Origin: Neoechinorhynchus agilis
Taxonomy: Eukaryota; Animalia; Acanthocephala
Assembly: GCA_051530055.1 (NCBI GenBank)
Contig: CM121341.1
Coordinates: forward strand, 16,718,784-16,782,783
Length of the DNA stretch: 64,000 nt
Reading direction: 5' to 3'
Under the pieces are notes generated by a model. That model did no database searches. It worked only from the letters and a program-made list of their open reading frames with translations, and was not told the origin of the DNA. Positions 30,747 to 62,728 of the stretch are shown here, in pieces (within the stretch, counting starts at the first letter, position 1; each line of letters begins with the position of its first letter). The translations under genes and the position numbers were made by a program.

Positions 30747-31208
<462 letters not shown>

Positions 31209-32029
31209 TGACGCTAGTAAAGTTCAACGATTAAGTACGAAAAATACATTGCGTCGTAACGAATATTTAACGTTTTCAGGGAAACATTGAGGCACGAGAA
31301 TCCCTTCGCTTCTTACATCGTATTTTTTACGCAGATTCCATATCGTTAATATGAGCTTTGCTAGGCGAAAATATTAGTGTATGGCACAAATGGGAGCAAG
31401 AAGTAAAGATGCGCGTTAACATCAAAGACATTTTCTTGGATCCAGTGGCAAAACACTGATTGATTTTTGAGAATTAACACTGCAAGAGTAATTTATGAAC
31501 TTATTGTAATCAATAACTTTTTATTAATCATCGAGAGAAAATCCATCGGGATGGTAGAATTTTTAGTTCCGGTGATCATAATCCCGATTAGATCACATTT
31601 TATTGAATTAATCGCCTCATCTATCAGTGGTTCTTAGTATTCAAGACAATGGCAATTGACGCTTGGAAAAAACCAAGACAACAATAGGCATTTAGTGTAA
31701 ACTTCAGCCTATTGCCTCCATTGGAACCGCGAAATAGCAATGCCGCCGACGTTTAGTACGATAACAAGGAAAGTTAAATCGAAACATGGAACCACTCTGT
31801 TCAAAAATTTAACAATAAAGACAAGTTCCTCGTTATTAATCCATTGAGTTCAGTATTTTCTTTTTAAACAAAAAGATCCGTTGTGAAACTTCGTAAGTGA
31901 GAGTGCAAAATAAATAGCGATGATAAACATTGAAAAAGAATAGATAACGCCACATGCTAATAATCGAAAAAATATGATAAACATTGGAAGCAAAAGATTA
32001 ATGGTAAACTCTGCGATCAGTGCGATTCA

Positions 32030-32892: not shown

Positions 32893-33060
32893 AATAAAAA
32901 CAATATTATTTGTATCTGGCGCAAAAATTAAAAGAAATATATTGATTCAAATATGTTGTGCCTTTATCAAGGTTGTTTGCAAGTGTTTACGACGACCTTG
33001 ATAAAGGCGAATCAATAAATTTCTTTTAATTTTTACACCAGATACAAACATGAACAATTC
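32893..33060. mobile_element. MITE family M copy
   Basis: TGTATCTGGCGCAAAAATTAAAAGAAAT...CCTTTATCAAGGT / ACCTTGATAAAGG...ATTTCTTTTAATTTTTACACCAGATACA. Confidence 0.75.
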
Positions 33061-33095
33061 AATTTTCAAAAACAACAACAACATTACGAAATCTA

Positions 33096-34801: not shown

Positions 34802-35672
34802 TGAGCTGGTTAACGACAATCTCTGAAAAAATAAGCTACAAACCCGGAATTTTCGACGTTGGGCTGAATGGGGAGGGTGTGGATCGCTATTAATTAAAAA
34901 TGCTTTTATTTACGATCAATTTTCGAGTTTAAATTAACCACGTGCATCTAAGCAGATAAAATAGTAACAATTTAAACCAATAATCGATTTATTAGAAAAA
35001 TTACTTTTGAATATATGATACTTTAACTATAGATTTTTGAGAGTACATGCTCTAAAGAACAACCTGCAATAATAATTGTCATCGAATATCATTTCTCCAG
35101 ATTTAATTTTCTACAATTTTTTATTTTAAAAACATCTTGTTTCATTTAGCTTTCAAATTTTCTTTTTTAACCTAATAAAATGATCATCATTGTGAGTAAA
35201 TTACTTATGCAAAACGAGTCATTTCGAGTTTTAAATAAATCTAAATTAAGTCAAAAAAAGAAGTCATGCTTTACCAAAACCATTTTATGTAATAAAACTC
35301 TCGAATATGTACCTTTTAAGTTTATTTTCCACTAATCGAAACCAATTCATTTTTGAACTAAATTCAAAAAACCATCAAACGAACTCAATTCCGGCGCAAA
35401 AACCCGGCCGCGTGTGCAATTCTTCAACTGCATCCAATCTTTCGCAATCTTAGCGGTTTATTTAGAACGTTGTCGTTTTAATAGCTAATTTCACCTTCTT
35501 GTCGAAAAATGGGAATAATTGCTGGCTGTTCATTTTTAGGATTTCACTTATGAGATCGATGCTGGATGGCGAAATTTTGAATCTTAAATGTAGTGTCGGA
35601 ATATGGATGACAGAGTTTTCACTGTTAAAAAAAACCTGGAGCACATATTAAAGAATCTGATTTAAGTTTTAA

Positions 35673-35792: not shown

Positions 35793-35809
35793 CTGAGTAT
35801 ACAATGTTT

Positions 35810-36005
35810 TTAGATTGAATTATTCATGCTTATCTATGGCGGAAAACTTAAGAAATTTATTAATTCCGATATTTTACAGGTACAATATCGTACCTTTAGC
35901 TCACGTATTTAAAAACTTACGAGCAACCTCGATATAGGTATGAGATTGTGCCTTAGAAATACCGAATTTAATAAATTCCTTAAATTTCCGCCATAAACAA
36001 GCAGT
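35810..36005. mobile_element. MITE family M copy (a half copy also lies at 36140-36215)
   Basis: ATGGCGGAAAACTTAAGAAATTTATTAATTCCGATATTT / AAATACCGAATTTAATAAATTCCTTAAATTTCCGCCAT. Confidence 0.72.
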
Positions 36006-36349
36006 GTGATTTATGTATTAAAGGTGTAAGACGGCTTCGAACAAAGTGCGGTTTCTCAATTTAGGGTATTTTTTAACATTTCAAAAAAGAGGGTTAGTAA
36101 GCTTTTGAGCCAAACATTAATCTCTTTTGATATGTCGCCTCCGAAATACCGTAATCAATAAATTTCTTTTAATTTTCCGCCATATAAAAACATGAACAAT
36201 TCAATCTTCAAACAAGCGGACAAAGTCCCAAATCAAGAGGAGCCAAGACATTTCTTAGATTACGGAATGACGGTTCAAATTGAGCGATTAGTTGCTTAAT
36301 TTCAACAAGTACAAAAACCGTTTACTCTGCGGCTCCAAAATCATAAGAA

Positions 36350-37484: not shown

Positions 37485-38637
37485 TCACCATTCAGCTTCT
37501 CCGTAAGCCTTAGAGAAAACGTACTCTCTGCCATCCACATGCATAACAGCATCTTTGATAGCAAACTTCCATTTCGCTTTTGCGCGGCTAATTTTGTCAT
37601 ATTTGCAAATAATAATGTTACTCGTAGAATGAACTCCAGATTGTTCTTCATCTGTGAGATCATCATCAGAGTTCAAAGGATCCACATCTTCAACTGGTTC
37701 TGCGGTCGCTTCTTGCTCAGTAGCTGTAGCTGTCAAATCTATGCCGGACACATGACTAAACTCATCACTATCAGATAAACCAGTCTCGTCTTCCTCAATA
37801 TCAGATTCATCTCCATTATCTTCGTCACTTGAGTCATCGGGATCATCCGATTGATCGTCGGATGAAGAATGATCACGTTTACCATCCATTTGGCTAATGT
37901 CACTACGCTTTTTGACCGAATCAATCACCGTCGGTCCTGTCGATGATTGAACTGTTTGTGGGACAAATCCAAGGGATGAAACTGGATGCGCGGTTGGCCA
38001 TTGTCTCGCCCGTATGTCCGAACAAACCATTGGCTCCTTTTTTATCTCCGACCAACTGTCTCTAAAGAAGTTTAAACCTGCCTCTGAGATTGCGGGTTTT
38101 GTAGTCGTTAAAGGATTGGTGATAGGAATTGCAGGCGAGTTCCTATTTGAATTATTGCCAGCATATCGATTTACCATCGGTAGAGCTGATCTTCTGTTGT
38201 TACTTTGTACATTTCCAACTAACTGTACGAACGGTTGTTGCATTGGAACCACGTGAATATCTCTTGGCTCAGTTTTGACAACGTGTGGATGATGAATCGA
38301 TTGTCCGATATACATTGTTTGCTTTGAATGTCTTTGAGTATTGGTTTGTGATCGAAGATCTGATATTTGACCCAACACACCGGACTGAATCAACCGCTGC
38401 TCCCAGCCCTATTTTAGGAGAAAAGTAAAGCCGGTAATTTTTTAAATAGGTGAAATGTATACTTTACGTATCAAGTCCACTCTGTCCTGCCCAATACCTT
38501 TATCCTTAAACAACTTCGATACCCGGTCCAATGATTCATCGATTACTTCACAATACAACTTTTGCTACGATATTAGAGTAAGCAATGAAAATGAGGACGA
38601 GTTCAACGAATACCGTTTGATTCGGATGATGTTGCAT
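37485..38637 (-). CDS. GTF2A1: Transcription factor IIA alpha/beta; 3 exons (38637-38614, 38564-38463, 38408-37485), 349 aa
   Basis: Splicing of 49- and 54-nt GT-AG introns gives MQHHPNQT|QKLYCEVIDE...LIRK|GWEQRLIQSG. QMDG taspase-type site, acidic linker, DPLNSDDD...CKYDKISRAKAKWKF...GREYVFSKAYGEAEW. Confidence 0.95.
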
Positions 38638-38782
38638 GTAATCTGGGTATGAATATGAGTTCGGTATCATATCTGAAACTTTTGGTAGCGCTATCAATGA
38701 ACCAAAATTAGAACTGCTAAATGTGCCAGAAACGACTTTAAAAAAGACAAATATAGCATTGTGTGAAGAGTGAATCGTTTAG

Positions 38783-38960
38783 GTTTTTATATAGCGGAAA
38801 AATTGAAGTAATTTATTTATTGAATCCGATATTTCGGCACCATCAGGTTGTTTAAGTGTTTTATTGGCCTTAAACCAATTCGATAAAGGTACACGATTGC
38901 GCCGAAATATCGGATTTAACAATAAATTACTTCAATTTTTCCGCCACATTAAAAATATAA
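38783..38960. mobile_element. MITE family M copy
   Basis: GCGGAAAAATTGAAGTAATTTATT...ATCCGATATTTCGGC / GCCGAAATATCGGAT...AATAAATTACTTCAATTTTTCCGC. Confidence 0.8.
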
Positions 38961-39910
38961 CATTGTTTTTAAATAACACTTTCATTTGTTCGAAGTTTGC
39001 AGATAAACGTCAGCGATTAATCATCTTATCTGTGATGAATTAAGCTTTTTTAAGTCACATTCATCAATGATGACCTTTCTTCGAATCTTATACTACAAAA
39101 CTGATTATTGCTTGCTCCAATTCGTAAGCCGAACTTAGCGCCTTTCGTCCAGTGAGCCATTCTCACTACACGAGTCCGTAACTATCAGAACCATAATCGT
39201 GTGTTCGCTACACAAATTAGTTGGAGTGCAATGAGCTTAAATCAACACTTTGTTTACAAGAAGTTCTTAATAAATACAAGGATAAACGCGTTTTACTTGA
39301 ACTTATCAATTACTTTTAAGTAGTGAATCTAAGATTCTAAGAAAGAGAGCCGGGCTATTGTGGGCATGATTTTTTCAAAATTAATTGAGGATTATATTTG
39401 ATGGAATTTATACGAAGGATCGGTGCTAATTGCTTGATCGCATAGGTATCGCATAAATCGACAAAATAGGGAAGATGTCAAAATGGAAACATATAATGAA
39501 CGAACTTAGATGGCTTTATGTTCTACAAAGGCACACATCGACAATCGAACAATGGATTCGACAGTTTCTTTTCAATGCAACAAATAATTGAATTGTTCGC
39601 CGCGTTGCATTTAACTGCAATTGTATTTTTGACGCTTCTAAACCCGATCCGAGTCACTGGTTTCTTTTTAATGGAAAAACCAGTTACGCCAAATAAAACT
39701 CGCGTACTTCTCGTTTATACAGATCATAGCACAGATTTGAGCAGTATAACGAATATATTTTGTCAGCTATAGAAAAAAGGTCTCAGAAATTGATCGTTAC
39801 AATATTGCGATTGATAATGTCTAACAAAGATGAACAAGAATTATGAAATTGATACACGGGTCCTTTTCTTTGTTAATTAAAAAATAAACGTGTTATATTA
39901 AGTTTTGTAT

Positions 39911-40713: not shown

Positions 40714-41682
40714 TTACGATGCAGTTGTGGTGTTTCGACGGCGTAAGCTATTCCCTAGATTGAATGGAACAAAATTACAACAATACGTTTTATTTTGTTT
40801 AAGAAGTGGAACCATGTACCTCTGGGTACTCTTGATCACCTTAGAGTTGATGACGTATCCGGAAATTGGAATGGATGACGGCCGACGACAGAGAGAAAGC
40901 AAAAACATTTTATTATAGACCAAATCAGCGATCGAATCACACGCGCTGCTGCATTTGAAGTTGTCAAAATCTGCTTGCATTGACCTATTAAACGGTATTC
41001 GTCCCACATACGCGACTCCTGTCTTTTTGGATAAATCGGTAACGGTTTGAAAACTATTATTTTCGAACAAAGAAACCATGGTATGACATTCAGAGCATTC
41101 GAGTTCACCATCTTCACCTGCCATGTTCTCCACAATTCCGATGATTTCTACTTGCATCTTTGTGCAAAACGTCACTTGTCTTCGGACGTCACAAATGGAC
41201 AATAGATGATTCGTGGATACTAACAAAGCAGCGACATTTGCTCCTATCTTCTTTATGGCATCGATGATGGCTATGTGTTCATCAGATGTTCCCGGCGGTG
41301 TGTCAATAATCGTCAGAACGTTCGACTCAGCGTCTGGCCATTTGACAGAATCCATTAGCTTATCGATAAAGGCGCATTTCTTAGGTCCGCGCCAAATAAC
41401 TGCATCCGAATCGGATTTAAGAAGGCACGAAATTGACATAAGATGTATTGGAGAACCTTTGTTGTTCTTGATTTCTATTGGAATCCACTTGTCGTTATCA
41501 ACAATAACTTTTTCTACCTTGACACCCATCAGTCTAGCCATCGAAGGTCCACTCAAATCAACGTCCAGAATTCGGATCGACGATACTTTGGTTGATAGGC
41601 GCATGGCAAGTGCACGGGCAATGCTGCTCTTTCCGACGCCACCCTTTCCGGATATTACCAACAAAAAGCACTGTCGTTGCAT
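40714..41682 (-). CDS. NUBP2: Cytosolic Fe-S assembly factor NUBP2/Cfd1, intronless, with extended C-terminus
   Basis: SGKGGVGKSS, DVDLSGPS, AVIWRGPKK, IDTPPGTSDEH, GIVENM and CSEC; no N-terminal 4-Cys extension (which NUBP1 has). Confidence 0.9.
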   Translation of the reverse strand: MQRQCFLLVISGKGGVGKSSIARALAMRLSTKVSSIRILDVDLSGPSMARLMGVKVEKVIVDNDKWIPIEIKNNKGSPIHLMSISCLLKSDSDAVIWRGPKKCAFIDKLMDSVKWPDAESNVLTIIDTPPGTSDEHIAIIDAIKKIGANVAALLVSTNHLLSICDVRRQVTFCTKMQVEIIGIVENMAGEDGELECSECHTMVSLFENNSFQTVTDLSKKTGVAYVGRIPFNRSMQADFDNFKCSSACDSIADLVYNKMFLLSLCRRPSSIPISGYVINSKVIKSTQRYMVPLLKQNKTYCCNFVPFNLGNSLRRRNTTTAS

Positions 41683-41850
41683 TTTTATAATATCTAAATT
41701 CAAAGGTTTTCCTGGGGGTTTTCAGCTGTAAACTAGTCATAAAATTTTGTTTCCGCAAAATTAAAGGGATTTATCAGAACTTCTTAGTTTTCCCCACCTC
41801 TAGGATTCAAAAATTCCCTGATTTATTTTCCCCCGATATTTCACCTCTCG

Positions 41851-41980
41851 GAAAATTCGGACATTTCCCCGGTTTGCCACATCTAAAATACGTTTGTAAG
41901 CTTTTAAATAAAGGAACACGAGCTTAAATACTTAAAGGCATATTATAGATGTGGCATACCGGGGAAATGTCGGAATTATC
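41851..41980. mobile_element. MITE-like inverted repeat
   Basis: AATTCGGACATTTCCCCGGTTTGCCACATCTA / TAGATGTGGCATACCGGGGAAATGTCGGAATT. Confidence 0.7.
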
Positions 41981-42293
41981 CTAGATGTTAAATTTATGGC
42001 CGCATTCAACATCTAACTACCAAAGAAAGATCTGATTCAGTGGAGATTCTTTTAATGTTCCGCCGCCCCAAAAACACTGACGTCACTCATCGCTTCCCCC
42101 TTCCCCGAGCGAATTATGCTTCTTCAAACGATAAACAAACCAGTTACGCGGTTTAAAATACGTCACACCCGTCTCCTACTCTAATTGGCTGTTTCATTTC
42201 TATTCTGGAAGAACACAAAATGCGCCTTTGACTTCTTCGCCGCAAGGCCGCACACTCCGGCGTACCACACACACTCGCCTCTTCCTTTTCAAG

Positions 42294-44489
42294 ATGACGG
42301 ATTTCGTGAAAGACAACTCAATTCAAAAACGTCAGGACAGCTCGTCAACTCTTTCAAAGTCCCCAACTTCTCCTCCTACGTCGACAACGACAGATACGCG
42401 CGCTGAGCCACCGCTGGATGCTAGAATTGTACGCGATGCAATTGACGAGGTAACCCAGAGGCTACTTCGTTTTTCGTATAGAATCGAGAACCAGGTCGCC
42501 AGTGCCATCGCTAGCATTACGCCAATGATAAACTCAATGACGTCAGCGATCGATGAAATGCGAATGGAATGCGCTATGAATAGACGGCGGATGCAGATGA
42601 TCATTGAGATGCAACAGACGAACGATGGAGATGCCAATAGGAAAGTGACGAACTTTAACTCTATTTGTGAAGGAATGACTCAGAAAGTTAGCGATTTAGA
42701 ACAAGCATTGTCCCGATTGACCCTCAAAGCAGACCAAACGCGACCTGCCATGGTACAACAATTCCCAATGTATGGTCCTCCTCCAATGTATCGATCACTT
42801 CCTCCTCATCAGCAGCCACTGAATCCAAATGCCTACGCTCAAATGATGGTCCGTCCACAGCTTCATCCCCAAGGAATGCAAAGCACTTTTGGGTCCACTG
42901 GTCCATCGTGGCAGTCAATGCCACCTCAACAACCACCACCGCCACCAACAATGTTCTCACCGCAACAACCTCAGATGTTCCCTCCACCGCCACAACCGGA
43001 ACGAGGTATACCCGATATCAGAGGAGAGAAACTACCACGTCGCGCTGCTCAAGTCTTTTGCTCGAAACCAGAATCAGATGATGATGATGAAGATTCCGAG
43101 TATGACGAAGAAGAAGCGGGCGAAGAAGATGAGGAAAGTGACGGTTTAAGCGAACCGGAACAGAAACAAATGAACTTTAAGCCAGCTTCAATGTTCGAAA
43201 AACCCCTTGCGAAACCGGAGTTTATCTTCGGTCAGGGGAAGAAAGCTTGTCAACAGTCTTTCGACAAGAATCAGAAAGGAATTCTAAAGGAATCTTTAAA
43301 AAAAGATACTCCTGTTATCAGTGAGTCCAAATCAATATTTGGAAATTCAAAACCCGTAAATATCTTCGGTGCTCCAATACAAGTCAAACCAGCGGACAAA
43401 CCAACCTTTCAGTTCAATAAGGAACCTAGTGTTTCGGCCATTCCAAAATCTCCTTCAATCTTTGATACCAACCAAGACAAGGCTGCTAAACCATTTTCTG
43501 CTCCTCAATTAGCAAAAGCACCCGAATCCAAGTTCGCGTTTTCATTTAAACCAGCTACGGATCCGAAGGAACCAAAATCTACGGTGCAACAACAGACGTC
43601 GTCCAATGACAAACAACCAACTAGCTGTTTTGGATCTCTTAAATTTGGAGACCTTCCTCCTGCGTCACCTAAGGATAAGCAGACCACGACGCCTTCACTT
43701 TTCGCTGGATTTGCTTCTCAACCATCTTCAAAATCCTTAAATACTCCTGTGTTTGGTAGTGGTAGTACTACAGCTGGATCAACAGGCAATCCGTTTTTGG
43801 ATGCTCAAAAACAAGTTTCCAACTTTGTAGGCACGGATAAAGGCACCAAGGACACTGGTATTGTGTTTGGATCAAGTTTAAAACAGGGTGACTCGAAGAT
43901 CGGATCAAGTAATTTGTTCGCTTCTGCAACTTCGCGATCTGCTGAGAAAGTTACACCGTTATTCGGCAATGCGCCACGAGGAGCAGCAAATGCGGATAAT
44001 GGTCGAGATTCCACGGAACCTGCCAACGATGCTTTTAGTTCAAGTGACTACAAACCTATTCTTTCCTTACCAGAGAAAGTAGATTTGTCAACGGGGGAGG
44101 AGAAACACGAGATTCTTTTTAAAAGTGATCCGTGTATTCTGTACAAGTTCGAGAGTGCGGATAAAGCTGAATGGAAGGAATGCGGGCGTGGATCGGTTAG
44201 TATTGGTCGAGATGACAAGAACAGATATCGATTGATATTTCGACGTGATCAAGTTTTAAAGTTGGCTGCTAATCACATTCTCGATTCTTCAATCAAGTTC
44301 ATTCCTCGCTCTAATAAGCCGAATTGTCTTTGTTGGTACGCAAATGACTTCGCGATCGATCCAGAGGGTCAAATGGCAACATTCTGTATTCGATTCAAGA
44401 CGGCAACGGATCCGCACAAGTTTGTCAACGCTTGTGCCTCAGCTGGTGCTGAAGTGCCTACTGTGCCTGAGGTTTGCGACATGAAGTAA
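42294..44489 (+). CDS. FG-repeat nucleoporin with a single C-terminal Ran-binding domain (RanBP2/Nup358-like)
   Basis: Predicted coiled coil, P/Q-rich and acidic tracts, many FG/FxFG motifs, RanBD LPEKVDLSTGEE...EWKECGRG...RRDQVLKLAANH. First ATG at 42294, directly after a TTTTCAAG acceptor. Confidence 0.82.
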   Translation: MTDFVKDNSIQKRQDSSSTLSKSPTSPPTSTTTDTRAEPPLDARIVRDAIDEVTQRLLRFSYRIENQVASAIASITPMINSMTSAIDEMRMECAMNRRRMQMIIEMQQTNDGDANRKVTNFNSICEGMTQKVSDLEQALSRLTLKADQTRPAMVQQFPMYGPPPMYRSLPPHQQPLNPNAYAQMMVRPQLHPQGMQSTFGSTGPSWQSMPPQQPPPPPTMFSPQQPQMFPPPPQPERGIPDIRGEKLPRRAAQVFCSKPESDDDDEDSEYDEEEAGEEDEESDGLSEPEQKQMNFKPASMFEKPLAKPEFIFGQGKKACQQSFDKNQKGILKESLKKDTPVISESKSIFGNSKPVNIFGAPIQVKPADKPTFQFNKEPSVSAIPKSPSIFDTNQDKAAKPFSAPQLAKAPESKFAFSFKPATDPKEPKSTVQQQTSSNDKQPTSCFGSLKFGDLPPASPKDKQTTTPSLFAGFASQPSSKSLNTPVFGSGSTTAGSTGNPFLDAQKQVSNFVGTDKGTKDTGIVFGSSLKQGDSKIGSSNLFASATSRSAEKVTPLFGNAPRGAANADNGRDSTEPANDAFSSSDYKPILSLPEKVDLSTGEEKHEILFKSDPCILYKFESADKAEWKECGRGSVSIGRDDKNRYRLIFRRDQVLKLAANHILDSSIKFIPRSNKPNCLCWYANDFAIDPEGQMATFCIRFKTATDPHKFVNACASAGAEVPTVPEVCDMK

Positions 44490-46029: not shown

Positions 46030-47757
46030 ATCATGTTTTGTTTTTAATGGACACTTGAGCGGGCTGCTGTAACGATTTGAGCTTCCGTCGTCTTACAGCT
46101 TTCTCAGGAATCAACAAATGCGCGTGGAGATGTGAAGTGAGTGAAAGCTGCGACAACGAAACGGCAAAGTGTCGAGCTAATGCCCAGAACTCTCTCGCAT
46201 TGTCTACGGAAACACAATCCCCTTCCAACCGCTCGGGATATAAATAGTGCCTCGTCAATAGATAGTTCCTACGGGTCCTTGGCCAAAAACCTAACTTACG
46301 TCGAGAGTATTATTTCTCCGGCACTGAGTGGTGTTTTGCCCATGCGTCAGGATTCAGTGTGTTGCGAGTGCTTTTCATCAAACGTTGAAGCATAGGATGT
46401 TCATTTTTGCCTATCTATAGATGATCCTGTGATTGTCATGGGGCGAACATCGTTCGCTGATAATCTCGTAGACCACGAAGCTTCGAGTGCAAATCGAATC
46501 TTGTCGCCCATTTTTGTCCAAGGACTTCCCTGGTCCATGAGTACACATCAATGACCGATGCTAGTCATCTTTCCGGCGTTTCATGATGCCCGGTTCTCGT
46601 CAGGATTCGCCGAATTGCAGGCGCACTTCTGTGGACAATCCGAAAATCCATTCCCGGCAGTCGCAGCAGCTTTCGAACGTCACTAGTGAACTTTTCACTG
46701 ATATATGGGGCCTTGAGAATCGGGTTTCCTCCATATAGATTCTGGGAAAGATCATCTTTCCGTTTCTCTTCTCTTGAATGACACCGTTGCTGGGACCGCA
46801 TGATCTCGTTACGTTTGTATCCATCATCTGCGAAAATTGCGTTCAATATCTCTATCGCCAATCGTTTCTCCGTTAATGACGATGAGCAAACCAGTGTTGT
46901 CCTGTCCATCTCAGCATTATATTGCTTGTTTCATTAAACAAGGATAATGCGAATTTCGATGCATGGCTGTCCTTTTACGGTTTGCGATATTAACTGAAAT
47001 CAGTGATATTATTAATTTGTAAGCACAAATTGAGGAACGGTAGATAATCCGATTTTTGTCTCGCGTCGGCTTAATTCTACCTGATCCCACAATCACATTA
47101 TTCACATTGTGGAGATAAATTTTGCTCAACGTTATATGCGGGAATTCGCACTGCATCTCCAAATCATCGAGGAAAATCAATGCCAAGACGGTAGCAAGGC
47201 TGTTTCCCATTTACAGTCCATGGATTTGTCTGTAACATCGGTCGTTATATCGAAAGTGAGTCCAGTCACGTCCGTCGGTAGCATTCCCAATATATTTAAG
47301 TCCTCTTCGTCCTCATTCAACCACTTCTCGCGTACGCTTCCTCACTGTCGACGTTCTTCCCCTAATTTGTCATAAGCGACGGAATAATACCGTTTCGGAG
47401 ACATCGCTTGAGGAATAGAATTCGCTGCTTTTGACCCTTTAACGCCCTCAAAATCGTCATGTAGTTTGTGACAGTAGTAAAATCGAACCTAACTCGAGCT
47501 GAAGACATACTTGCACAGTCGATTCGTAATTCATTGAGTGATAAAGGCGAAGACCTAATTTCTATCGATAAAGGTGTAGAAAAGATCATGATGGAGCGAT
47601 TACTGCGAGATGGGAAGGACGATTGTGAATTGAAGTGCACGACGTTGAACAGCATCTTTCGTGAAGTGATAGCCACAAGAGACGTGAAAGATTTTATAAA
47701 ACTTCCATGTTGATGCTGCATTATTATTATTTCATGACAGAAAATCAACAGGTCCAC
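46030..47757 (-). mobile_element. Penelope-like element, internally deleted
   Basis: N-terminal ILFLKRCLRNGIIP, RT MGNSLATVLALIFLDDLE, KAPYISEK, GIY-YIG VVYEI...IGK...QRL. Confidence 0.78.
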
Positions 47758-49114
47758 ACGATGTAGCAGCCGAGTTTTGGAAGTCTTAATGCTGGAACAC
47801 AGCCACGTGGCTTGCAGCCTTTTTCAATAAAGTGATAGAAGTCGAAAGATCTCCGAGTGAGTGGCAAATTAGCACAACAGTACCTATATGGAAAAAGAAC
47901 GGAAATCCAGCCGAATGCAAAAATTACCGATCGATCCGACTAATATCCCACACTATGAAAATCTATGAACGAATTATCTAAGCGCGCATCCATAATATTG
48001 TCGAAATCAGCGCCAATCAAACAGATTTCGTGAAAGGCTATATAGCACAGTCGATGCGATTCATGCTGTGCGACTTTTCTTTGAGAAATATTGTGAGAGA
48101 AACCTACCGATCCACGCAGCCTTCCTCGACCTCGAAAAAGCGTTCGACCGTGTACCGCGTGAATTCATCTGGCACGCGTTACGTAACCATAGAGTCCCAG
48201 AGGGGTTCGTAAAGTGCGTGAAACTGCTATATACAGATCCTAGGAGCAGAGTACGAAGCGCGACGGGGATATGCTTTCAAAATCTCGATTGGCGTTCATC
48301 AGGGAAGCGCGCTTTCCCCCGTATTATTTATACTTGTCATGGAAACAATCAGCCAAGTCATACAGCGCGTCCTACCCCATTCACAATCCTTTATACCGAC
48401 GACGTCTTTCTGTCTTCCGGGGACAAAGATTATCTCGAAAAATTGGTAGAGGCATGGCATGATAAACTTTCAAAACACGGACTGCGTCTAAATCTTGGCA
48501 AGTCAATGTATTTAACAACCAAGGCAAACGAAACCGGCACTGACTTGCCACGTTGCGAAAAATTCCGCTACCTCGGATAAAAGATCTCGTCCGACGTTGA
48601 GTTTAAAACAGAAATCAATGAACGAATCAATGCAACGTGGCTAAAGTGGAGGAGGACGGCAACGGGTGTCCAATGTGATCGAAAATTAAAGGACGCATCC
48701 AAGTCAGTGATCTACAGAACAGTAGTCCGACCAGTTGCGCTGTACGGCTCCGAATGTTGGCCCATTACGAAGGCTGCTAAAAAAGATTAGCCAGCATGGA
48801 ATCGAATATGTTACGTTGGACTAGTGGACACACTCGCCTGGATCATGTCCGAAATGACGACATCAGACTTCGTTGTGATGTTGCGCCGATCGTCGACAAG
48901 CTCAGAGAAAGCCGCCTCGGCTGTATGGTCATGTGATGCGCTCGAGCGAGGGTGCCCTAGAGAGGGCTAAGCTGGAAATCGAGATGAAAGGCAAACGAGC
49001 CCGAGGTCAACCAAAACAACGCTGGCTCGATATTAATCGAAGCGATCTTCGAACAACTAAACTTATCCCGAACGAAGCCACTAATCGAATAAAATGGCGG
49101 ACACTATCAAAAGT

Positions 49115-49341
49115 TTCAATTGGCGATGTTTTATTCCGAAAAAATAGATTTATCTTGATATTTTCGGCCTTTGCGTTGGCCTTCTTCAGTCAATTGCTTG
49201 TAAGTTTTTAAATATTGGAATTTAAAAACTTACAAGCAATTGACTGAAGAAGGCCAACGCAAAGGCCGAAAATATCAAGATAAATCTTTTTTTTCGGAAT
49301 AAAACATCGCTAATTGAAACTGAAACTATAATTTTTTTACA
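49115..49341. mobile_element. 227-bp palindromic double-hammerhead element, family B, with 12-bp TSD
   Basis: 102-bp arms (49112-49213 / 49220-49321, 2 mismatches, 6-nt loop); flanked by ACTATCAAAAGT (49103-49114) and ACTATTAAAAGT (49342-49353). Confidence 0.88.
49244..49276 (+). ncRNA. Minimal hammerhead ribozyme, family B (mirror copy at 49157-49189, minus strand)
   Basis: CTGAAGA-A-GGCC(aacgcaaa)GGCC-GAAAATATC; one extra A relative to the 17116 copy. Confidence 0.72.
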
Positions 49342-50248
49342 ACTATTAAAAGTAGCCGATCCCGCATCCAAATAGGACAAAGGCTGAAGAGGAGGAGGAA
49401 GAAGAAGAAGAATTGAACGACGGCTCTTGAAAATTCAAATGATTAGCAAAATGGCATTAATGCCATAATCTTGTGAAAGAACTTCCTTAATTCGTTCTGA
49501 GTCAATTAAAATTCGGGGGAAAAATATTTACGAAATAGATACACTTCGTGAAATTTAGGATAAACAAAATTGATAAAACTGGCGACGTTTCGATGACCAA
49601 GTCAAATTTTTGAGAGTTTAACCGAATAAATGCAAAATGCACAAAGGTATTTTAAAACATGTTTTTTATGATCTTGTACAGTAAATAAGTTCAATTGGTA
49701 CGACGCGGTTTCATTGTATATTTAGTTCAAGGGGTGCAAAATAATTTGAGCTATGCATCTTAGATTATTAGTTCATCGGCGATTTAAAGTCTAGGAAGGA
49801 AACAACTGTTGATAGACGTTAATCGAAGATATTTGAAAAGAACATCATCGACTTGAGTTTTGATTATTTTCGTCTAAATTTTTTTGTTTCTAATGACACA
49901 ACCTAAAGTAATGCCGCAACCAAAGTCGCTTTGATCATGCTAAACTTCAGCCAATTTAAAATTACGATCCTTATGCAGATCGGAATTCAAATCATGGTTT
50001 CAAAAATTTTAAATAAAATGTCAAAAATCTTGAGCCTGTAAGAGATGTATTGAATCTATATAAACAGCGTGATACTTCTAAATGCAAATTTATACCAAAT
50101 TATGCGTATCTTGAAGTCTTGAAAAAATTATTCCGGAATTTCGTTTATAACGTGCGCTGATTGCAAAGTATGATCGGGTTCATTGAACGCTTTCTCCTTC
50201 AACCTCCTACTCCCGAATTAAAGTAAACAAAAAGTTATTTGAAGTACG

Positions 50249-51269: not shown

Positions 51270-52023
51270 TAGTTTTTATGTATATAAACACGTTTTATTT
51301 AAAAGAGGAAGAAGAATAGGTCACCGAACCTTGTAACTTAGGTAAGTTGACTATGGTTTGTAAATGATTTATTATGATATTGTTTGTTGCTGTAGGCTTG
51401 CTGCGGTGTTTGTTAAGCAAGATTGGACTGGCGGTAAGTATGAGTGGTAGAGGTGGAAGGATGTTTTCGAAGTAAAGGTCTTGTGGTAGAAGGTTTTTGC
51501 GTTTGAGAGTTTTGGGAGAGTTAGATGGGGAGTTTTAGGAGAGATGGGAATTCCGGGACGCGGTGGAGAATTTCAGGAGTACAGATTTTTCAAAGTTTAT
51601 TGATTCGAGGGGTTGCTTTCTATTGATTTTTGGACAATTTTGCGACTCGAGGGTGTTGATTATGATAATGAAATTGGTCATTTGGAAGTCGCAAGCGTCT
51701 GAGCAAAAGAGACGGTTTTGGAATTGAATTATGAGGCGGTTGTCTTTACGGCCTGGCCGAAACCTCAAACGAAAGGACGGGATGTGAAGTCTTTTTTGAG
51801 CCTCTTAGGCAACTTGACTAACGTTGATACGGGCAGTCTTCTTCTGAGCATTCGAAGAAGCGTTGGCTTACCCGTCTTTTTTGTCATTGTCAAGAGGAGA
51901 AATAGGATGAGCGTTGAGATGTATTAGACTTGCGGAGAGCGAGACGCTCAAGAGAAATCGATGTTGAAAGAGAGTATAGAAGTCATCGTTGGAAAGTTTT
52001 TAAGACGAAAGATGTCTTGAAAA
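51270..52023 (-). mobile_element. CR1-group LINE fragment, decayed
   Basis: Same purine/pyrimidine strand bias and AATAAAACGTGTT 3' end as the other copies; degenerate RT motif FCSDACDFQ. Confidence 0.55.
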
Positions 52024-52520
52024 CTAAGAAGCACTGGCAGATGAGGCGATCAATTCAATAAAGTGTGATCTAATCGGGGTTATGATCACCGGAACTAAAA
52101 ATTCTACCATCCCGATGGATTTTCTCTCGATGATTAATAAAAAGTTATTGATTACAATAAGTTCATAAATTACTCTTGCAGTGTTAATTCTCAAAAATCA
52201 ATCAGTGTTTTGCAATGGCCCCTTAAGGATCCAAGAAAATGTCTTTGGTGTTAACGCACATCTTTACTTCTTGCTCCCATTTGTGCCATACACTAATATT
52301 TTCGCCTAGCAAAGCTCATATTAACGATATGGAATAAACGCAACTGCCTAAAAAATACGATAGGCGCAGTGCTAAAAAAGGAGTAAGAAGCGAAGGGATT
52401 CTCGTGACAACTCTTTTGTGCTATGAGTGCCAAATTGTCGTCGATATTCTTTTTTTGCCTCAATGCTTCTCTGAAAACGTTCAATATTCGCCACGAAGCT
52501 ATGTATTTATTTAAATAAGT
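52024..52520 (-). repeat. Inverted third partial copy of the duplication's distal end
   Basis: Reverse complement of ~31230-31640 / 4803-5065. Confidence 0.88.
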
Positions 52521-52886
52521 ATGCATACAATCCGGTCTCATTGAGCATCTTTGACCATTTACAGAATTTTGAGCTGATTTTTGTCGACTATTACCATTGT
52601 TTACTTCCTCCTGATATCTACCAAAGGCTGATCTCTGAGTCGAGGAGATCTGGAATAAATAACAACAACGGACAAGAAGGGGCAAACTAAAATTTAATGA
52701 TGATGAAAACAAACCCGGCTTGCCAGTAAAACTTAAAACATAATTAGTTAAGATATAAAACAAAATCAATCATTTCGTTAGGAACAATTTTTTGCAACAA
52801 ACCACAGACAATCAAAAAAGATATACAAAATGAGTCATACATACAATTAAGACTAATAATCACAGCCATTTTGTTATTTCAATTTT

Positions 52887-55464
52887 TTGTTAGGCGTGAT
52901 CTGTATAATCCGTTTTTATAGGCTTCTAAGCATGCCGAATTATCCCGCAGGGGACTGCGGGATAATTCTTTTGTTATTTCAACATTATTTTCGTTATTCC
53001 CTTCTGATCTCGAGGCTCGTAGATCAGTCAAATGGAAATGAGGAGGGGAATCTCCGCGAGGTTCGTAAGGGGCGCACGAAGGAAGAGTTTCGCTGCCGTT
53101 TTTCAAAGCGATCACTGACTGAACGTGTCTCTTCGAAGCTTGAGGACGGAGATGTTCGGGGGGCTGTTCGGTTATTGTCATCCTCCAACAGTTTCGCAAA
53201 AGGAGACAGCGATACGCTACAAATACTCCGGTCGAAGCACCCATGTAGTAGCGGAAGTTTTGAAATTCCGTCTCCTCCCTTACAAGACATTTCAGAGTTA
53301 CAAAAGGCCATCTCAGCTTTTGCAAATGGTTCGGGTCACGGGCTTGACGGACTAAGGCCTCAGCACCTAAAGGACACGATGTCCTTTACAACTGGTGAAG
53401 CAGCTCTCTCTCTAGGAAGTGCGCTTTCTCGAATAGTCGACCGCCTGACTGGAGAGGACCTGAACCCCGTTGCAAAGGACCTATTTTTCGGAGCCTCATT
53501 GTGTGCGCTCACAAAAAAAGAAGGTGGGATCCGTCCCATTGCCGTACTTTCGATGATACGTCGACTCGCAGGAAAAATTCTCTGCAAACGTATTACAGAG
53601 AAAACCGGACAGCAACTTCGTCCAGTCCAACTGGGCTGCTGCACATCCTGCGGGGCGGAAGCTATTGTCCGCTCGCTCCGAAACTTTGCTACGAGAAGCT
53701 CAGAGCCGTGCGTGATTCTTAAGTGTGATTTTCAGAACACCTTTAATTCTCTCAATAGAGAAACCATGTTCTGCGCAATTAGGGATCACGCACCAGAAGC
53801 CTTCCAGTATTTTCTCAATGCCTACGGAACCGCGACTCCTTTGCTTTTCGAAGACCTACTCATTTGGTCCGAAAGAGGAGTGCAGCAAGGAGATCCCCTT
53901 GGTCCAATCGCATTCTCCCTAACAATAAATCCAATAGCACATTCTCTCCATTCTAGCTTCAACGCTTGGTACTTTGATGACGCTACGCTCGGAGGTGATT
54001 CCTCCGTTGCACTGCGCGATTTGGAGACGCTGATTAGGGAGACCTCGAAGATGGGCATTGAGCACAATGCTGGAAAATGTGAGCTCCTTGTATTGAATAT
54101 TGGAGACGCCACCAAAGTCGAAGAACTAATGGCTGGGTTCGAGGCCGTAGCTCCAGGTCTGAAACTCGTGACATGGGAGCAACTCAGCCTCCTGGGCAGT
54201 TGCGTCTTCGATTCAAATGTGGAAGATGAAATCGGTCATATCATACCGAAACTTTCGTTGCTGTGCGATAGAGTGAGCGCTCTCTTGGCTCATGAAACCT
54301 TCTTTCTCATAAAGAACGCGCTCTTCATCCCCAAATTATTGTACAAGGTTCACACAGCAACATTTTTCAAACACAAAAAAGGATTGGCAAAGCTGGTCGG
54401 CAAGTTGAGGGCTTGCCTCGAGCGTATTTTAAATGTCCAGCTCTCAGATGAGGCGTGGCGACAAGCTTTTTTGCCTGTGTCATCTGGGGGATTGGGAATT
54501 CGGGCACTAGTGGACCTTGCTTTGCCGGCCTTTCTTGGATCGTTTGAGGGGAGCCAAGAAAATTTTGAAGGAAAAGTTCTGTCTTGGCCGGGATTTTGTG
54601 GTGGCGGTTGAGGAATGGTGCCAGCAGACAGGCGCTAACCATGTTCCCGTGAATGGCCTCAGACAGTCGATCTGGGACGCACCTCTTGTCGCGAGAGCTC
54701 ACAGCTCTCTACTTTCCGGTTCTCGCGATGGGGTCGTCCGAGCTAGACTGTTGGCAGTTTCAACACGAGAATCTGGGGCGTGGTTGGAGGCTGTTCCTCT
54801 GGCATCAGTGGGAACTCTTCTTACTGATGAGGTAACGAGGATCGCAGTATCCTTAAGACTTGGTCTCCCGATATGCACGCCCCATCGCTGTCGATGTGGG
54901 TCTTTGGTTGATGCTTTCGGGCGAAACGGTCTCGTCTGCAGAAGGTCAGGAGGAAGGTTCTCACGCCATTCTGAAATCAATAACGCAATTTCTCGGGCGT
55001 TGAGAATGGCGAACTTCCCGAGCATCCTGGAACCCGCCCACCTTTGTCGACTAGACGGCCGTAGGCCCGATGGAATTTCGGTCTTCGTGTGGCGGGAGGG
55101 CAAATGCCTTCTCTAGGACGCCACGTGCGTGGACACCCTCGCAGCCAGCAACATCCCCTACTCCCTCGAAATCGCCGGTGGTGCCGCCAGTGCAGCGGAA
55201 GGGATGAAAATACGGAAATATATTCAGTTATCGAGGGCTCACTATTTTGTCCCCTTTGGGGTAGAGACGCATGGAGCGCTCGGCAGCTCGGCACTCTTTC
55301 TGCTCCAGGATCTCTCGAAGAACTTGAGAGAGGCAGCCGGAGACTCAAGAGCAGGCTTATTCCTTCGACAAAATATCTCGCTGGCAGTACAACGAGGCAA
55401 TGCTGCCAGCGTGATGGCGACGGTCGAGGAAGGACAAAAGCTGGAATTTTGCGGGAGGTGGTGA
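52887..55464 (+). mobile_element. CRE-clade non-LTR retrotransposon, 5'-truncated, with one frameshift and one nonsense codon
   Basis: KLEDGDVRGAVRLLSS, GLDGLRPQHLKD, GVQQGDPLGP, WYFDD; zinc knuckle CRCG...C...RH; RLE RPDG...GKCLL*DATCVDT...FGVETHG...LAVQRGNA. Confidence 0.93.
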
Positions 55465-55599: not shown

Positions 55600-56105
55600 A
55601 GATGCCAGAGGAGCAGTTCGTCTTTTATCATCAATGGACAGTCGCCAAAGATGACGAAACTTTACGAACTCTTCGTTTGAAACATCCCAGTGGCGGCGGT
55701 CAGCAGAATTTCGAAGTATCCTCGTCCTTCGATAAGATCCCTTATGTTTTATCATCGAAATCAGAATTGAAGATGGCAATCTCCTCTTTTGCTAACGGAT
55801 CAGTTCACGGGCTTGACGGGCTGCGGCCTCAACACCTGAAGGATATGACTTCCTTTTCAGTAGATGACGCTGCCCAGTCCCTTGAAGATGCATTGACACA
55901 CCCAGTCAACCAATTTACAGGCGGAAAGTTTATTCCAAAAGCAATTGAGTTATTTTTCGGCGCATCATTGTGCGCCCGCCCAAAAAATGAAGGTGGGATT
56001 CGTCCCATTGCAGTTGGAACAACTCTGCGCCGCTTAACAACAAAAATTTTAAATAAAAGGATCTCGGAAAAAGTGGGGATGCTGCTTCACCTTACTCAGT
56101 TAGGC
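55600..56105 (+). mobile_element. Second CRE copy (N-terminal RT fragment), in tandem
   Basis: DARGAVRLLSS, ANGSVHGLDGLRPQHLKD, GGIRPIAVGTTLRRL. Confidence 0.88.
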
Positions 56106-56756
56106 TATCGCCATCGCGTCTTCAAAAAGCGTTCCCGCATAAAGATGTTCGAAGATCGTGAAATCGTTAGTTTCATTAAAAGATCACAATAATTGAACGA
56201 GGTTCATGGAATTTCGATCAAGCATGACGACCAACTTTATTACACTTGAAGAGATTCCGTAGTAAATAAATTAGACCGATAACCAGTCGACAAGAAACTA
56301 ACTTTATACAGCGATCCAATCGTCGAAATGGAGCTCTTAAAAGTTCGGGTAAGTAGACAAAATCAAATGTGAGATCTACGGGGATAGTAAATTTGCATAA
56401 ATTCAGAAAACATACCGAGAATCGTAACGGTATTCGTTTCTAGAAGGGTGACGGCCAGTAGCATACAGCCGAGTATCACACTTAAATGAAAGATGAGTTT
56501 AGGGATTTTGTGTCCACGTTTTTGTACCAAGAATCGACAAAGGTAGACTTAGGCATGCTCCATAAGTCAATAGAACCGTTGGAGAATTTCGGTCAACTTT
56601 TTCATATCATTTTAAGGTTAGGGGTATTTGTAGCATTCGATTAGAATTCATGGCATTCAAAGGTTGCCTAGGTATAATGTTTTACTGTAGCTTAATTGGG
56701 CCAAAGCGTGTTTCAAAAATCGACTGATTAACAAAGTATGACAATGGTTTATTTAG

Positions 56757-58859: not shown

Positions 58860-59900
58860 CCGCGGTTTTCCTCAAGCTGGCAGCATTCCCTCATTGTACT
58901 GCGAGGGAGATGTTCTGTTTAAGGAATGCTGTCGTACGCGGGTCCCTTTTCATCGCCATCGACCTCCTTGCTATATGGGATACAAGCTGAAGTGCGGAAG
59001 TATGTGCAAAAACTTTGCGATGTAGAGGCAATTTTTAATAAAAAACGGTCTCGTGAGACGTTAGGTCTGAACATCTCTCACGCAGCAAACTCAGGACGCC
59101 AAATATATTTGTTACGTCCTTCGGAACATTCTCCTTGAAAACGCATGAACCCCGGAGACTTGAGTCGCAAATATTGATTCGTTTGATGCTCGGAGCGACA
59201 CTTTTGAATTGCTCGTAAACCTGCGAGCTTTCTGTGTCGTCCATGTTCAGGAGTAGCAATCCACACTTTGAGCTGTTCAACTCGAGGCATATCTTGGAGC
59301 TGATCTCGATGATACGGTAAATATCACCCAGAACAGAGAGTATCGTATCCAAGGGTGCCGTCCTCCATGTACCACGCGTTGAAGTTCGATTTTGGTGGCC
59401 TCACCAATGGATTGATTGCATCGAACCGAAGGAGTCACCCTGTTGCACTTCCCGTTGGGACCAGATAATGTTTCGATTATAAATCAGGGGTGAAGGGGCG
59501 CCGTAGGCTGTGAAGAAATATTGTAGTCTGCGGGATGTGCATTTTAACCTCGTCAAGTAGGACATTCCGTTCCAGAGAACAGAAAGCATTCTTGAAGTCC
59601 GCCTTCAAGACTATGCATCGATCCGTCGACGTTTCAACGAAGTTCCTTAAGGCGTGAACGATTGCTTCGGCTACACAAGGAGAGCAACAGCCGAGTTGCG
59701 CTGGGAGCAGCAGGCAGCCAACAGTCGAAGAAACCCTTTTCGAAACGATTTTGGCCACTAAACGCCTGAGTGTATTGCCAACAGCGATGGGACGGGTGCC
59801 ACGGTTGGCAGAGAATAGAAGCTCAGTAGGAAACGATCCTAGATTGTGGTTAAGCAAGCGATCGAACAACTTTCGCAAGGCAAGTTTGACTGAGATGCCA
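58860..59900 (-). mobile_element. CRE-clade RT fragment, decayed
   Basis: GTRPIAVGNTLRRLVAK, QLGCCSPCVAEAIVHALR, LKADFKNAF, EVQQGD. Confidence 0.85.
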
Positions 59901-60039
59901 CTCCCAGCTGAAGTGAAGGATACCATATCTATTTTTAAGTTTGTTTTCCTTTCATATTCAATTAAGAGAAAAAGTATGCAATGACAATGTTTTAACAAAT
60001 ATAGGTCTATAAAGGTGAATGCAGCAAGAAACTCATTTA

Positions 60040-60620
60040 AGCAGTGGAAACCAACGGTCTTAAGGTAAACAGGTTGAAGACGATATGCATGGAACCGGAA
60101 GCGTTGAAGTTAGGTGTGGATTTGACGATGAGAAGAACAGTGAAATATCTTGGCAGCGAAGTAAATAGGACAAATTACCTCGAACCCGAAATAACTGCTC
60201 CTATACAAAGCGAGTAGCTCAACTGGAGGAAGATGTCTAGTGTATTATGCGACAAAAGGATCTTACCGAAACTGAAAGGCGGCTGTTCGAGACGGTGGTG
60301 CGACCAGCCATGTCATATGGCGCCGAAATTTGGACGAGCGAGCAAAGCGACCTCAGAAGATTAGAAACGAACGAGATGGGGAGGGAGCTGTTCGGCACTT
60401 GCCGCTGTTCAGAGTTGATCGTCCAAAGAAGGTTATGCCGGCACGATAAAGTTTCGAAGTGCGAAGCATATCACATACTGCGCAGCACGGAGAGACTGGA
60501 AATCGCTGACGAGGAAGGACGAGGAAACGATGGGTGGGTTGCATTAAACAGGATAAATGGCTTGTCGATGGAACCACAACTTCTCGAGAGAGAAAAAAAT
60601 ACGTGAGTGAAAAAGAGAAG
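60040..60620 (+). mobile_element. RTE-clade LINE 3' fragment
   Basis: GLKVNRLKT, YLGSEV, FETVVRPAMSYGAEIW...RRLETNEM. Confidence 0.8.
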
Positions 60621-60749: not shown

Positions 60750-62728
60750 CTATTGCGTACGATTATTTTGATTTCTGCTTTTAATTATTCCATCCAAGAG
60801 TCTCAGGATATCCGTATTCTTTACAAATATACTCGGATTTTCATGCTGCTGGTCAATAAATGAAGAATTTTCGCTCTGCTGTGTCAACCAGTCGTTATTT
60901 AAGGAATCCCGGAATCCATCACGATTATCGGCCTCAAACGAATTCCCTTCTTGTGCTTCTGCTGCACTATCGCCCTCTGAAATCGCATTCAACTGAATTT
61001 GTCGGATATACTCGTCATATTCGGTCGGCTCATTCCACCACTCATAAATCTCAGCTTGAGCGTTGACGAACATACCTTCACCTTCCATAGGGTCACTTTT
61101 TATTGTCCTGGAACCTTGCTTGGCTAGGGGCGGCAACAAATCTTCTTGAATTCCAGCATCTAACGCCCTTTTATGCGAATGCGAGACTTCCTCTTTCAAA
61201 GGTGGTTCTTTTGAATTTCTATTACGCAATTGTGCGCTAGCAGCAGTTTGATCGTAGAAACTAATTGAGCCCTGTTCGTTAATACTTTCGAGCATTTGCC
61301 CAGCGTGAACCATTCGCGAGTCGTTTTTTTTGTCACATGATTTTCTCCCGAACTCCTTGGTAGAATACTCAGCCCCTGGTTCTTTTAGTTCGCTAATGGC
61401 GCCCTCGGATGGTTCCATTTTCTGTTTCTTCGCATCGGCAATTATTTGATCAATGAATGCTCCAACTTCATCTGGGTTAGTACTAGTGTTTGGCGCCGTA
61501 TTCATCCTCCGAATTGTGCATTGGTTTCTAGAAAATGGATTCGTACGGACTATCCCAGTGCCCTGATATCTCGTTGGAACACTTTCTCCGAGTGTCATTT
61601 GATTTGAGTTTGTTTGTCCAATTGTTTCGTTATTAATATTAACAAATCCTTCTTGGTTCGAGCTGTTAACATGACCTTGAAAAGTATTTCCGACTGGATT
61701 CAATACCGTAGCCGTGGATTGGTTTGCAGAATTTGGATCCGCCGGCATAGTCATAGGACCTTGCAATCCCATTGGACCACTTGCTCCGATACCCATTTGT
61801 TGTAGGCCGAAATTTGTAATATAATTTCCATTGTATGTGTGTACCGTTGGAGTATTCAGATTTGCTTGAAGGTAAGTATTATTTATTCCAATTCCATTAT
61901 TCATTTGTTGATTTGTGCCATCATAACCCCATTGTGTGTTCATGGTATTTTGAGTTATAATATTGTTTTGGTGCTGGAATTCAAATTGTTGTCCAAGAGC
62001 ATTTGGTTGAAAATTTCCGTTATATATTTGTGCTGGCTGATACCACGGATTATAGTTCATGGCAAATGTATTAGGTGGGATATTATTATAAGTTTGAGAT
62101 CTGAATTGTGGCAGCTGATTGTATCCATTGGGTGGATACAAATTTGGAGCTAATTGCTCCTGGGTACCATGGCTTTCGGTCGAAAACGGGTTGGGGAAGT
62201 CTCCAGTTCTTGTCCGTGTAGGTCGCCGTCCTCTTCCCGGTCTACGTCCGTCACGCGCTCCATTCATATTTTCCTGTCCAACCCGAGGTCGCTTTGCTGG
62301 ACGTTCCTTTATGTTGTTTGGATCGTACGTCCAATAGGATTCTCTGCAACCTGTGGCGCTTACCACCCTTACAAATTGATCATGGTGTGATAAATTGTGT
62401 CTTATCGAGTTCTAAAATTGAGATATTATTGAAGTTTTAAAAAATGAATCATGGCGATGCTCACCTTCATTTGATCGATATCTCTTTTGACGGTCATTGA
62501 TGCGAAATATTCAACATTACTAATCATCCAATTGTAGATTTCTTGTAGCGTTAGTCGCTGCTCTGCTGAGGTTGTAATCGCCAGCTGAATAAGTTCAGCA
62601 TAAGTGGCGAATCCCCAAGGATTTTGTCGTCTCCCAGGTTTCCTTACAGTCTCAGTGGCCGCCTGTTCATGTGGATTTATTGTCGCTGAGGCATTCTCGT
62701 AATTGTTTAATCGATTTAGATTGTTCAT
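60750..62728 (-). CDS. FoxO-like forkhead transcription factor; 2 coding exons (62728-62465, 62411-60750), 641 aa
   Basis: RRQNPWGFATYAELIQLAITTS...LTLQEIYNWM|NSIRHNLSHHDQFVRV...SYWTYDP. The 53-nt GTGAGC...TTTTAG intron sits at the K|NSIR position typical of FoxO genes. N/Q-rich and acidic C-terminal region. Confidence 0.85.

Follow-up and report, generated by a model that had tools for sequence, protein, structure and literature searches.

How does a palindrome with a hammerhead ribozyme motif in each arm come to lie within the last codons of another retroelement? The question is raised by positions 49103-49353 of a 64,000-nucleotide stretch of DNA from Neoechinorhynchus agilis (GenBank assembly GCA_051530055.1, contig CM121341.1, positions 16,718,784 to 16,782,783 of the forward strand; hereafter the window), where an insert of 227 bp interrupts a long interspersed nuclear element (LINE) of RTE type. 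The structure is real but ordinary: it follows the usual insertion pattern of Penelope-like elements (PLEs), and reveals neither a new kind of element nor a working ribozyme. The insert is probably a non-autonomous, or extremely 5'-truncated, product of the machinery of an endonuclease-containing PLE. Its palindrome most likely arose within one insertion event, by reverse transcription primed from both cut strands.

The locus is made up of the following parts (nt, nucleotides; ORF, open reading frame; TSD, target-site duplication):

47560-49102, plus strand: decayed RTE-like LINE ORF upstream of the insert, with an approximate 5' limit and several frameshifts and stops
48068-48580, plus strand: RVT_1 domain in the RTE-like ORF
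49103-49114: left TSD copy, ACTATCAAAAGT; it shares its final AGT with the start of the left arm (junction microhomology of 3 nt)
49112-49213, sense on the minus strand: left arm, a copy of a hammerhead-bearing unit truncated at the 5' end, its 3' terminus abutting the left flank without a tail
49157-49189, minus strand: minimal hammerhead motif of the left arm
49214-49219: 6-nt spacer ATTGGA at the head-to-head junction
49220-49321, sense on the plus strand: right arm, another copy of the left arm's unit, likewise 5'-truncated, ending at the proximal terminus, ...AATTGAAACT
49244-49276, plus strand: minimal hammerhead motif of the right arm
49322-49341, plus strand: one-sided 3' extension of 20 nt (the 'tail'), GAAACTATAATTTTTTTACA, with no partner on the left
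49342-49353: right TSD copy, ACTATTAAAAGT
49354-49375, plus strand: last codons and stop of the RTE-like ORF, ...V)ADPASK

An inverted-repeat search reproduced the arms described in a first-pass annotation of this DNA: each is 102 nt long, and they are 98% complementary, with two mismatches and 6 nt between them. The mismatches are C/T at ...CATCGC(C/T)AATTG and A/T at ...AAATCT(A/T)TTTT, and the left arm overlaps the left TSD copy by its AGT. The same annotation spoke of a 227-bp palindrome, which is correct for the insert as a whole; only 210 bp of it are palindromic, and the 20 nt at the right end are unpaired. The spacer probably consists of a few additional 5' nucleotides of one of the two copies. 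The tail resembles those of relatives at 17036-17175 (minus strand) and at L002:20175-20463, where L002 denotes the DNA upstream of the window.

The insertion site can be restored precisely. The imperfect 12-bp repeat ACTATCAAAAGT / ACTATTAAAAGT flanks the insert as had been claimed; as a control, 398 pairs of sites were drawn at random from the window, and 2.5% of them had a direct repeat of 12 nt or longer, with one mismatch allowed, within +/-45 nt. When the flanks are joined with a single copy of the repeat they read ...GQPKQRWLDINRSDLRTTKLIPNEATNRIKWRTLSKVADPASK and stop, i.e. they end ...NRIKWRTLSKVADPASK and stop. The conceptual RTE C-terminus of 171 amino acids has 103 RTE-type protein matches, the best of them 61% identical over 100% of the query length. 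Eight aligned RTE-type relatives (46-61% identity; consensus KWRxxxRRADPATK) are uninterrupted at the site, and the spacing from KWR to ADP is five residues in these and in the restored RTE alike. As the relatives are uninterrupted, the 12 nt are a true TSD and the insert is younger than the RTE; the option that RTE copies natively contain the segment is contradicted by the same alignment. The proposed empty site, and integration as a unit after that of the RTE, are thus borne out by the duplication, the restored frame and the eight relatives, and the conserved ORF allows the empty site to be inferred exactly. The RVT_1 domain and the conserved RTE-type C-terminus are both present, assigning the host LINE to the RTE clade.

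A BLAST search of the window with the insert found no second copy of its exact family, and its relatives there were found only by motif scan and self-comparison. A BLAST census with all arms over 72 kb (the window and 8 kb upstream of it) recorded 14 independent insertions of short hammerhead-bearing units, which occupy about 3.6% of this DNA and belong to three related families:

Family A: the locus at 49103-49353; a solo copy at 17036-17175 (minus strand); a palindrome at L002:20175-20454
Family B: core CUGAUGA; an internal ATG opens 36 conserved codons that reach the distal terminus
Family C: the U3-A8 type

Inverted pairs account for eight of the 14 insertions. All eight are head-to-head, in (-,+) order, with their 3' ends towards the flanks; solo, non-inverted copies also exist, and no tandem (+,+) or (-,-) arrays of intact units are present in the 72 kb. 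The ends are readable in five of the eight pairs, with TSDs of 10-15 nt and, in each, a tail on one end only:

49103-49353, including the flanking repeats: TSD 12 nt; tail 20 nt, on the right arm
L002:20172-20478: TSD 13-15 nt; tail 21 nt, on one arm; 134-nt arms, 95% alike, 12-nt spacer
16476-16664: TSD 12 nt; tail 29 nt, carried by the long copy; inverted arm of just 40 nt
25492-25659: TSD 10 nt; tail about 27 nt, carried by the long copy; inverted arm of 26 nt
38749-38966: TSD 14 nt; tail about 25 nt, on the left arm

The 134 nt of the L002 arms are the result of the inverted-repeat search and shrink to about 122 nt if the part overlapping the flank is left off. The tails, 20-30 nt long and family-specific, are conserved within a family at unrelated loci, and must therefore be encoded by the element. 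The tail-less junctions match the target by 3-4 nt, and the junction points differ between copies. Arms are near-equal in four or five of the eight pairs. Two pairs are asymmetric: duplication is confined to the outermost 40 nt at 16485-16652 and to the outermost 26 nt at 25502-25654, and their inner part is present once.

Further palindromic copies with TSDs, the prospect of which the first-pass annotation had raised, are thus present: eight inverted pairs, five with readable TSDs. Its proposal of a fold-back product 'that moved on its own' does not survive this survey, as the arrangement is the ordinary head-to-head one of PLEs, occurs in eight of the 14 nearby insertions and has differing junctions. 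The derivation from a PLE terminal repeat, by contrast, is strengthened: head-to-head pairs, one-sided tails and TSDs of variable length match published PLE insertions, and the window contains far more hammerhead-like sites than expected (see below).

Several of the relatives have features of their own. The palindromes of family C at 15409-15632, 32909-33072, 35805-36216 and 38759-38962 are older (arms 73-78% alike), have the core UUGAUAA and carry one-sided tails of the form ATGAACAATTCAATCTTCAAAC; the copy at 35805-36216 is broken by about 120-190 bp. The palindrome at L002:20172-20478, about 8 kb upstream of the window, is a younger one of the 17149 subfamily. Beside its tail-less arm, 11 of 15 nt of the target agree with the reverse complement of the tail of this same element, as if the target had been picked or primed via tail similarity. 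The ORF of family B (MMNPTRFETSL...) is found at 16546-16653, at 25502-25612 (minus strand) and, outside the window, some 620-700 nt upstream of its start; a 42-residue alignment search with its starting peptide gave no protein match.

Might the palindrome be a chimeric or mis-polished product of the hybrid Illumina/Oxford Nanopore assembly? The assembly was made with MaSuRCA with little HiFi data (PMC12690905), and PLE structures are known to trouble assemblers (PMC8557442). However, the structure of 210 bp is shorter than the paired-end insert size of 500 bp set in the assembly, its arms differ at two positions, its ends are asymmetric and its exact duplication restores an ORF. Seven more such structures, of differing ages and in part older and diverged, lie within the 72 kb, and we give scarcely any credence to an artefact.

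Both arms contain the motif CTGAAGA-A-GGCC-AACGCAAA-GGCC-GAAAATATC, at 49244-49276 (plus strand) and 49157-49189 (minus strand), or, as RNA, CUGAAGA-A-GGCC-AACGCAAA-GGCC-GAAAAUAUC. For the minimal hammerheads of PLEs, Cervera and De la Pena reported core boxes, one unpaired base between A9 and G10.1, a G10.1-C11.1 closing pair, a palindromic 15.2-16.2 with no helix III loop, and a need for two copies to pair for activity; pairs on opposite strands, 100-700 bp apart, were noted in 2014, as was a U3-A8 variant in schistosome PLEs (PMC4209133). The motif at 49103-49353 is alike in most of these respects. The core boxes C3-U4-G5-A6-N7-G8-A9 and G12-A13-A14 are satisfied by CUGAAGA and GAA in both arms. 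One unpaired A lies between A9 and G10.1, helix II (GGCC / 8-nt loop / GGCC) is closed by G10.1-C11.1, there is no real helix III loop, the pairs are on opposite strands, and the U3-A8 variant occurs in a sister family. The putative cleavage site is about 45 nt from the proximal terminus.

The difference lies beyond the GAA. The strict helix III rule (A15.1-U16.1, palindromic 15.2-16.2, then H17) failed for the sequence GAAAAUAUC with its one extra A, and the motif passes only a relaxed descriptor. Here the core reads GAA-A-AUAU-C, one A more than the palindromic A-U-A-U of the relatives at 17149 (minus strand) and in L002; GAA is followed directly by AUAU-C in those two and in family C, and by ACGU-C in family B. 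With the extra A, a dimeric helix III cannot form in register. It is present in both arms, so the template RNA already carried it. By direct reading, UUGA/UCAA (4 bp) might form the short helix I of 4-5 bp that flanks the cleavage site in the minimal type, but one position off register with C17.

A minimal-hammerhead descriptor built from the published features (PMC4209133) found six sites in the window, against 0.06 expected from 200 first-order random sequences. A metagenome scan for the exact hammerhead returned 0 matches. The layout of unpaired base and helix II is common to all sister copies, and five helix II variants all pair (GGCC/GGCC, GAUCCG/UGGAUC, GAACC/GGUUC, GGCAC/GUGCC and GGUAC/GUACC); the core pair C3-G8 changes to U3-A8 in family C (TTGATAA in four of six arms). 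Because sister copies keep the layout while the sequence of helix II changes, the motif, judged by comparison of the copies, is a real and selected RNA element at the family level.

This covariation of helix II and of C3-G8, pointing to selection at the RNA level, also bears on the notion that the insert is a miniature inverted-repeat transposable element (MITE) or fold-back DNA transposon, in which chance hammerhead-like boxes happen to lie in terminal inverted repeats. The insert is small and flanked by a duplication, its inverted arms are long, and several palindromic relatives lie close by, all of which would suit such an element. Yet the TSD length varies (10, 12, 12, 13-15 and 14 nt), the ends are non-equivalent with a one-sided tail, the junction points vary between copies, and solo non-inverted copies of the same hammerhead units exist. 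A MITE origin is accordingly very improbable.

The presence of the motif should not be taken for activity. The full RNA folds as a 102-bp hairpin of -164.4 kcal/mol (z = -31), while a single arm, at -12 kcal/mol (z = 0.6), folds no better than shuffled sequence; the suggestion that the hairpin would sequester the ribozyme agrees with these energies. The first-pass annotation had placed a hammerhead on each strand. The motif is indeed in both arms, but this is an automatic consequence of the palindrome, and a transcript of either strand would contain one sense hammerhead and its exact antisense. Likewise, what each arm contains is a motif of the minimal, dimer-dependent type with an extra A at the junction of core and helix III, rather than a demonstrated activity. 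Published minimal motifs cleave poorly, and only as dimers (PMC4209133). Self-cleavage at 49103-49353 is predicted to be very unlikely, because of the dimer dependence, the insertion in the core and the antisense pairing. The hammerhead is most likely a passenger of the template, inactive in its present context; a read-through transcript would form the 102-bp hairpin, which may act as a source of small RNAs or double-stranded RNA.

The architecture shows a single event that left two copies, each starting in the 3' region of the unit, one tailed and one tail-less, with their 5' ends joined. To produce it, the RTE target would be cut with a stagger of 12 nt, and a template RNA containing the hammerhead would be reverse-transcribed from its 3'-terminal region, with both 3' ends of the cut as primers. 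The bottom strand would begin at a distal start site, giving the right arm and the 20-nt tail, and the top strand at a proximal one, helped by the 3-nt AGT match, giving the tail-less left arm. Both complementary DNAs (cDNAs) would halt about 102-108 nt in, and joining of their ends head-to-head, followed by fill-in, would give the 210-bp palindrome, the one-sided tail and the 12-bp duplication.

A single cDNA might do the same by copy-back. Starting from the right-hand nick, it would fold back or switch onto itself near its 3' end, copy itself as far as the proximal terminus and then switch onto the left overhang via the AGT microhomology. Palindromes seen at the inverted junctions of rotifer Penelope have led to a proposal of self-priming (PMC3846280). 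Near-equal arms with a short spacer, found here (6 nt) and at L002:20175-20454 (134-nt arms, 12 nt) at differing absolute lengths, would follow naturally from copy-back, and so would the 3-4-nt microhomologies at tail-less junctions. Copy-back cannot, however, make the asymmetric pairs at 16485-16652 and 25502-25654: as only the outer 40 or 26 nt are duplicated in these family B pairs, a second initiation at the 3' terminus is required. The tail, moreover, could not be copied from a tail-less arm. Together, these two observations lead us to prefer separate priming to the self-primed fold-back of the first-pass annotation, which leaves both the 20-nt tail and the asymmetric neighbours unexplained. 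The arms also differ at two sites (later mutation could explain this as well), and a single mechanism for all eight pairs is more economical. We regard copy-back as unlikely.

Some observations weigh against priming from both strands by a PLE machinery. No gene for the telomerase-like reverse transcriptase or the GIY-YIG endonuclease of a parent PLE is present among the ten largest ORFs of the window, which belong to host genes and other LINEs, and the family B peptide search gave no match; the link to PLEs therefore rests on the ribozyme motif and on how the insertions are built. At 20 nt, the tail is shorter than the 30-40 nt of published cases. Neither the locus nor a single arm matched an Rfam hammerhead (clan CL00010) at the gathering score or at E <= 10; only generic long-hairpin microRNA models matched, below threshold. 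Rfam gave no hammerhead match for the cleaner relatives at 16546 and 17149 either, so its models do not cover the minimal type and the negative result says little about it. Finally, near-equal arms, as in four or five of the eight pairs, are not predicted by independent priming without an extra assumption. At the present locus the two lengths are 102 and about 108 nt, and the L002 palindrome has a spacer of 12 nt. A single fixed 5' end for all families, i.e. a template of 110-130 nt, was considered and rejected, since the L002 arms are longer. The near-equal lengths may instead stem from a template 5' end shared within one insertion event, from a dimeric complex copying two templates in step, or from copy-back.

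A more general statement can be put forward only tentatively, and we hold it with more doubt than confidence: in N. agilis, hammerhead units mobilised by PLEs would integrate mostly as head-to-head dimers (eight of 14), about half with near-equal arms, their two cDNAs being coupled. If so, the coupling would be via a dimeric complex that copies its templates in step, or by one cDNA being copied from the other. The genome would then contain thousands of loci with perfect hairpins of about 100 bp, ready substrates for RNA interference. At the least, the units flag an unannotated and apparently abundant repeat class in acanthocephalan genomes.

The remainder of the window and the DNA upstream contain other repeats and genes. 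A direct duplication of 4.4 kb (423-4784 and 25672-30101; 96.7% identical, about 25 kb apart) carries a fragment of a radical-SAM-domain gene and a family B hammerhead copy. Inside the ORF at 30718-31290 there is a perfect tandem array (30747-31208) of about nine copies of a 51-bp unit, 100% identical. A palindrome of 156 bp at 41838-41993 (arms 74% alike) is without hammerhead boxes, and an element of about 700 bp at L002:16790-17490, some 4.3-5.0 kb upstream of the window, has terminal inverted repeats of 234 bp, 88% alike, and has no relation to the hammerhead units. A repeat of about 375 bp, dispersed and lacking an ORF, is present at 4803-5177, 31383-31748 and 52013-52287 (minus strand), 88-99% identical. 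Fragments of SLACS/CRE-like non-LTR reverse transcriptases lie at 52860-54608, 55602-56189, 59480-60109 (minus strand) and 12234-12864; their closest database matches, in moths, barnacle, octopus and tardigrade, reach about 40% identity, and protein searches with the RTE and SLACS/CRE-like reverse transcriptases matched no proteins of the same genome. Host genes are located at 17771-20963, 33770-34819, 37485-38393, 40714-41703, 42228-44489 and 60750-62728, mostly as single long ORFs, and comprise a tRNA isopentenyltransferase (intronless), eIF3h, TFIIA, a NUBP-type ATPase, a RanBP1-domain protein and a forkhead protein, the gene for which has a single short intron (62412-62464).

In rotifer Penelope (e.g. 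Pen2a_Av of Adineta vaga), inverted pseudo-long terminal repeats (pLTRs) have a tail of 31 bp on one of them and duplications of 8-10 bp (PMC3846280), and PLEs in general have an inverted, 5'-truncated copy with a tail of 30-40 bp, often at one end only (PMC8557442). N. agilis is an acanthocephalan, a relative of rotifers, and no earlier description of PLEs for acanthocephalans was found in the literature searched. The insert shares with these insertions the head-to-head copies of a terminal repeat, the optional one-sided tail, the short TSD of variable length, the heavy 5' truncation and the use of other retroelements as targets. It differs in that nothing lies between the inverted partial repeats, neither an ORF nor a direct pLTR, and in the lengths of tail (20 nt, against about 31-40) and TSD (12 bp, against 8-10).

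For the Poseidon PLE of Anolis, in vitro work showed cutting and extension of both target strands, and reverse transcription from two adjacent internal start sites, the spacing of which equals the tail (Frangieh et al. 2024, PMC11167929). The N. agilis system would be alike in the cutting and extension of both strands, in two start sites with tail-length spacing and in a hammerhead shortly upstream, at about 45 nt here and about 85-90 nt there. The minimal events in the 72 kb constrain the mechanism: a tail on one side only and pairs with unequal arms indicate that synthesis began on both target strands, in agreement with the in vitro work. The family B ORF that opens at the hammerhead ATG also recalls the Anolis PLE, in which the start of reverse transcription lies 111-118 nt inside the ORF. 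The cut sites differ in sequence: that of the present insert ends in AGT, whereas Poseidon prefers ATT; family B insertions at 16485 and 25654 do start at ATT.

In non-LTR retrozymes, tandem repeats of type I hammerheads give rise to circular RNAs (PMC7229834; bioRxiv 10.64898/2026.07.22.740005). Those are likewise short, non-coding hammerhead units thought to be mobilised by PLEs; their units, however, are head-to-tail tandems of a fuller type I, whereas the ones described here are inverted and minimal. A last comparison is with L1 twin priming, in which, as reportedly described by Ostertag and Kazazian in 2001, the second target strand also acts as a primer, giving an inverted segment with one duplication. 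Priming by the second strand, the inverted segment within a single insertion and the single TSD are common to both. In L1, however, the second primer is internal and the segments differ, while here both copies start in the same 3' region, giving a true palindrome. The locus at 49103-49353 is the smallest form of a PLE inverted insertion, made of two inverted partial repeats and nothing else, and offers a clean minimal case of the pattern, with two ends but only one tail and a single duplication.

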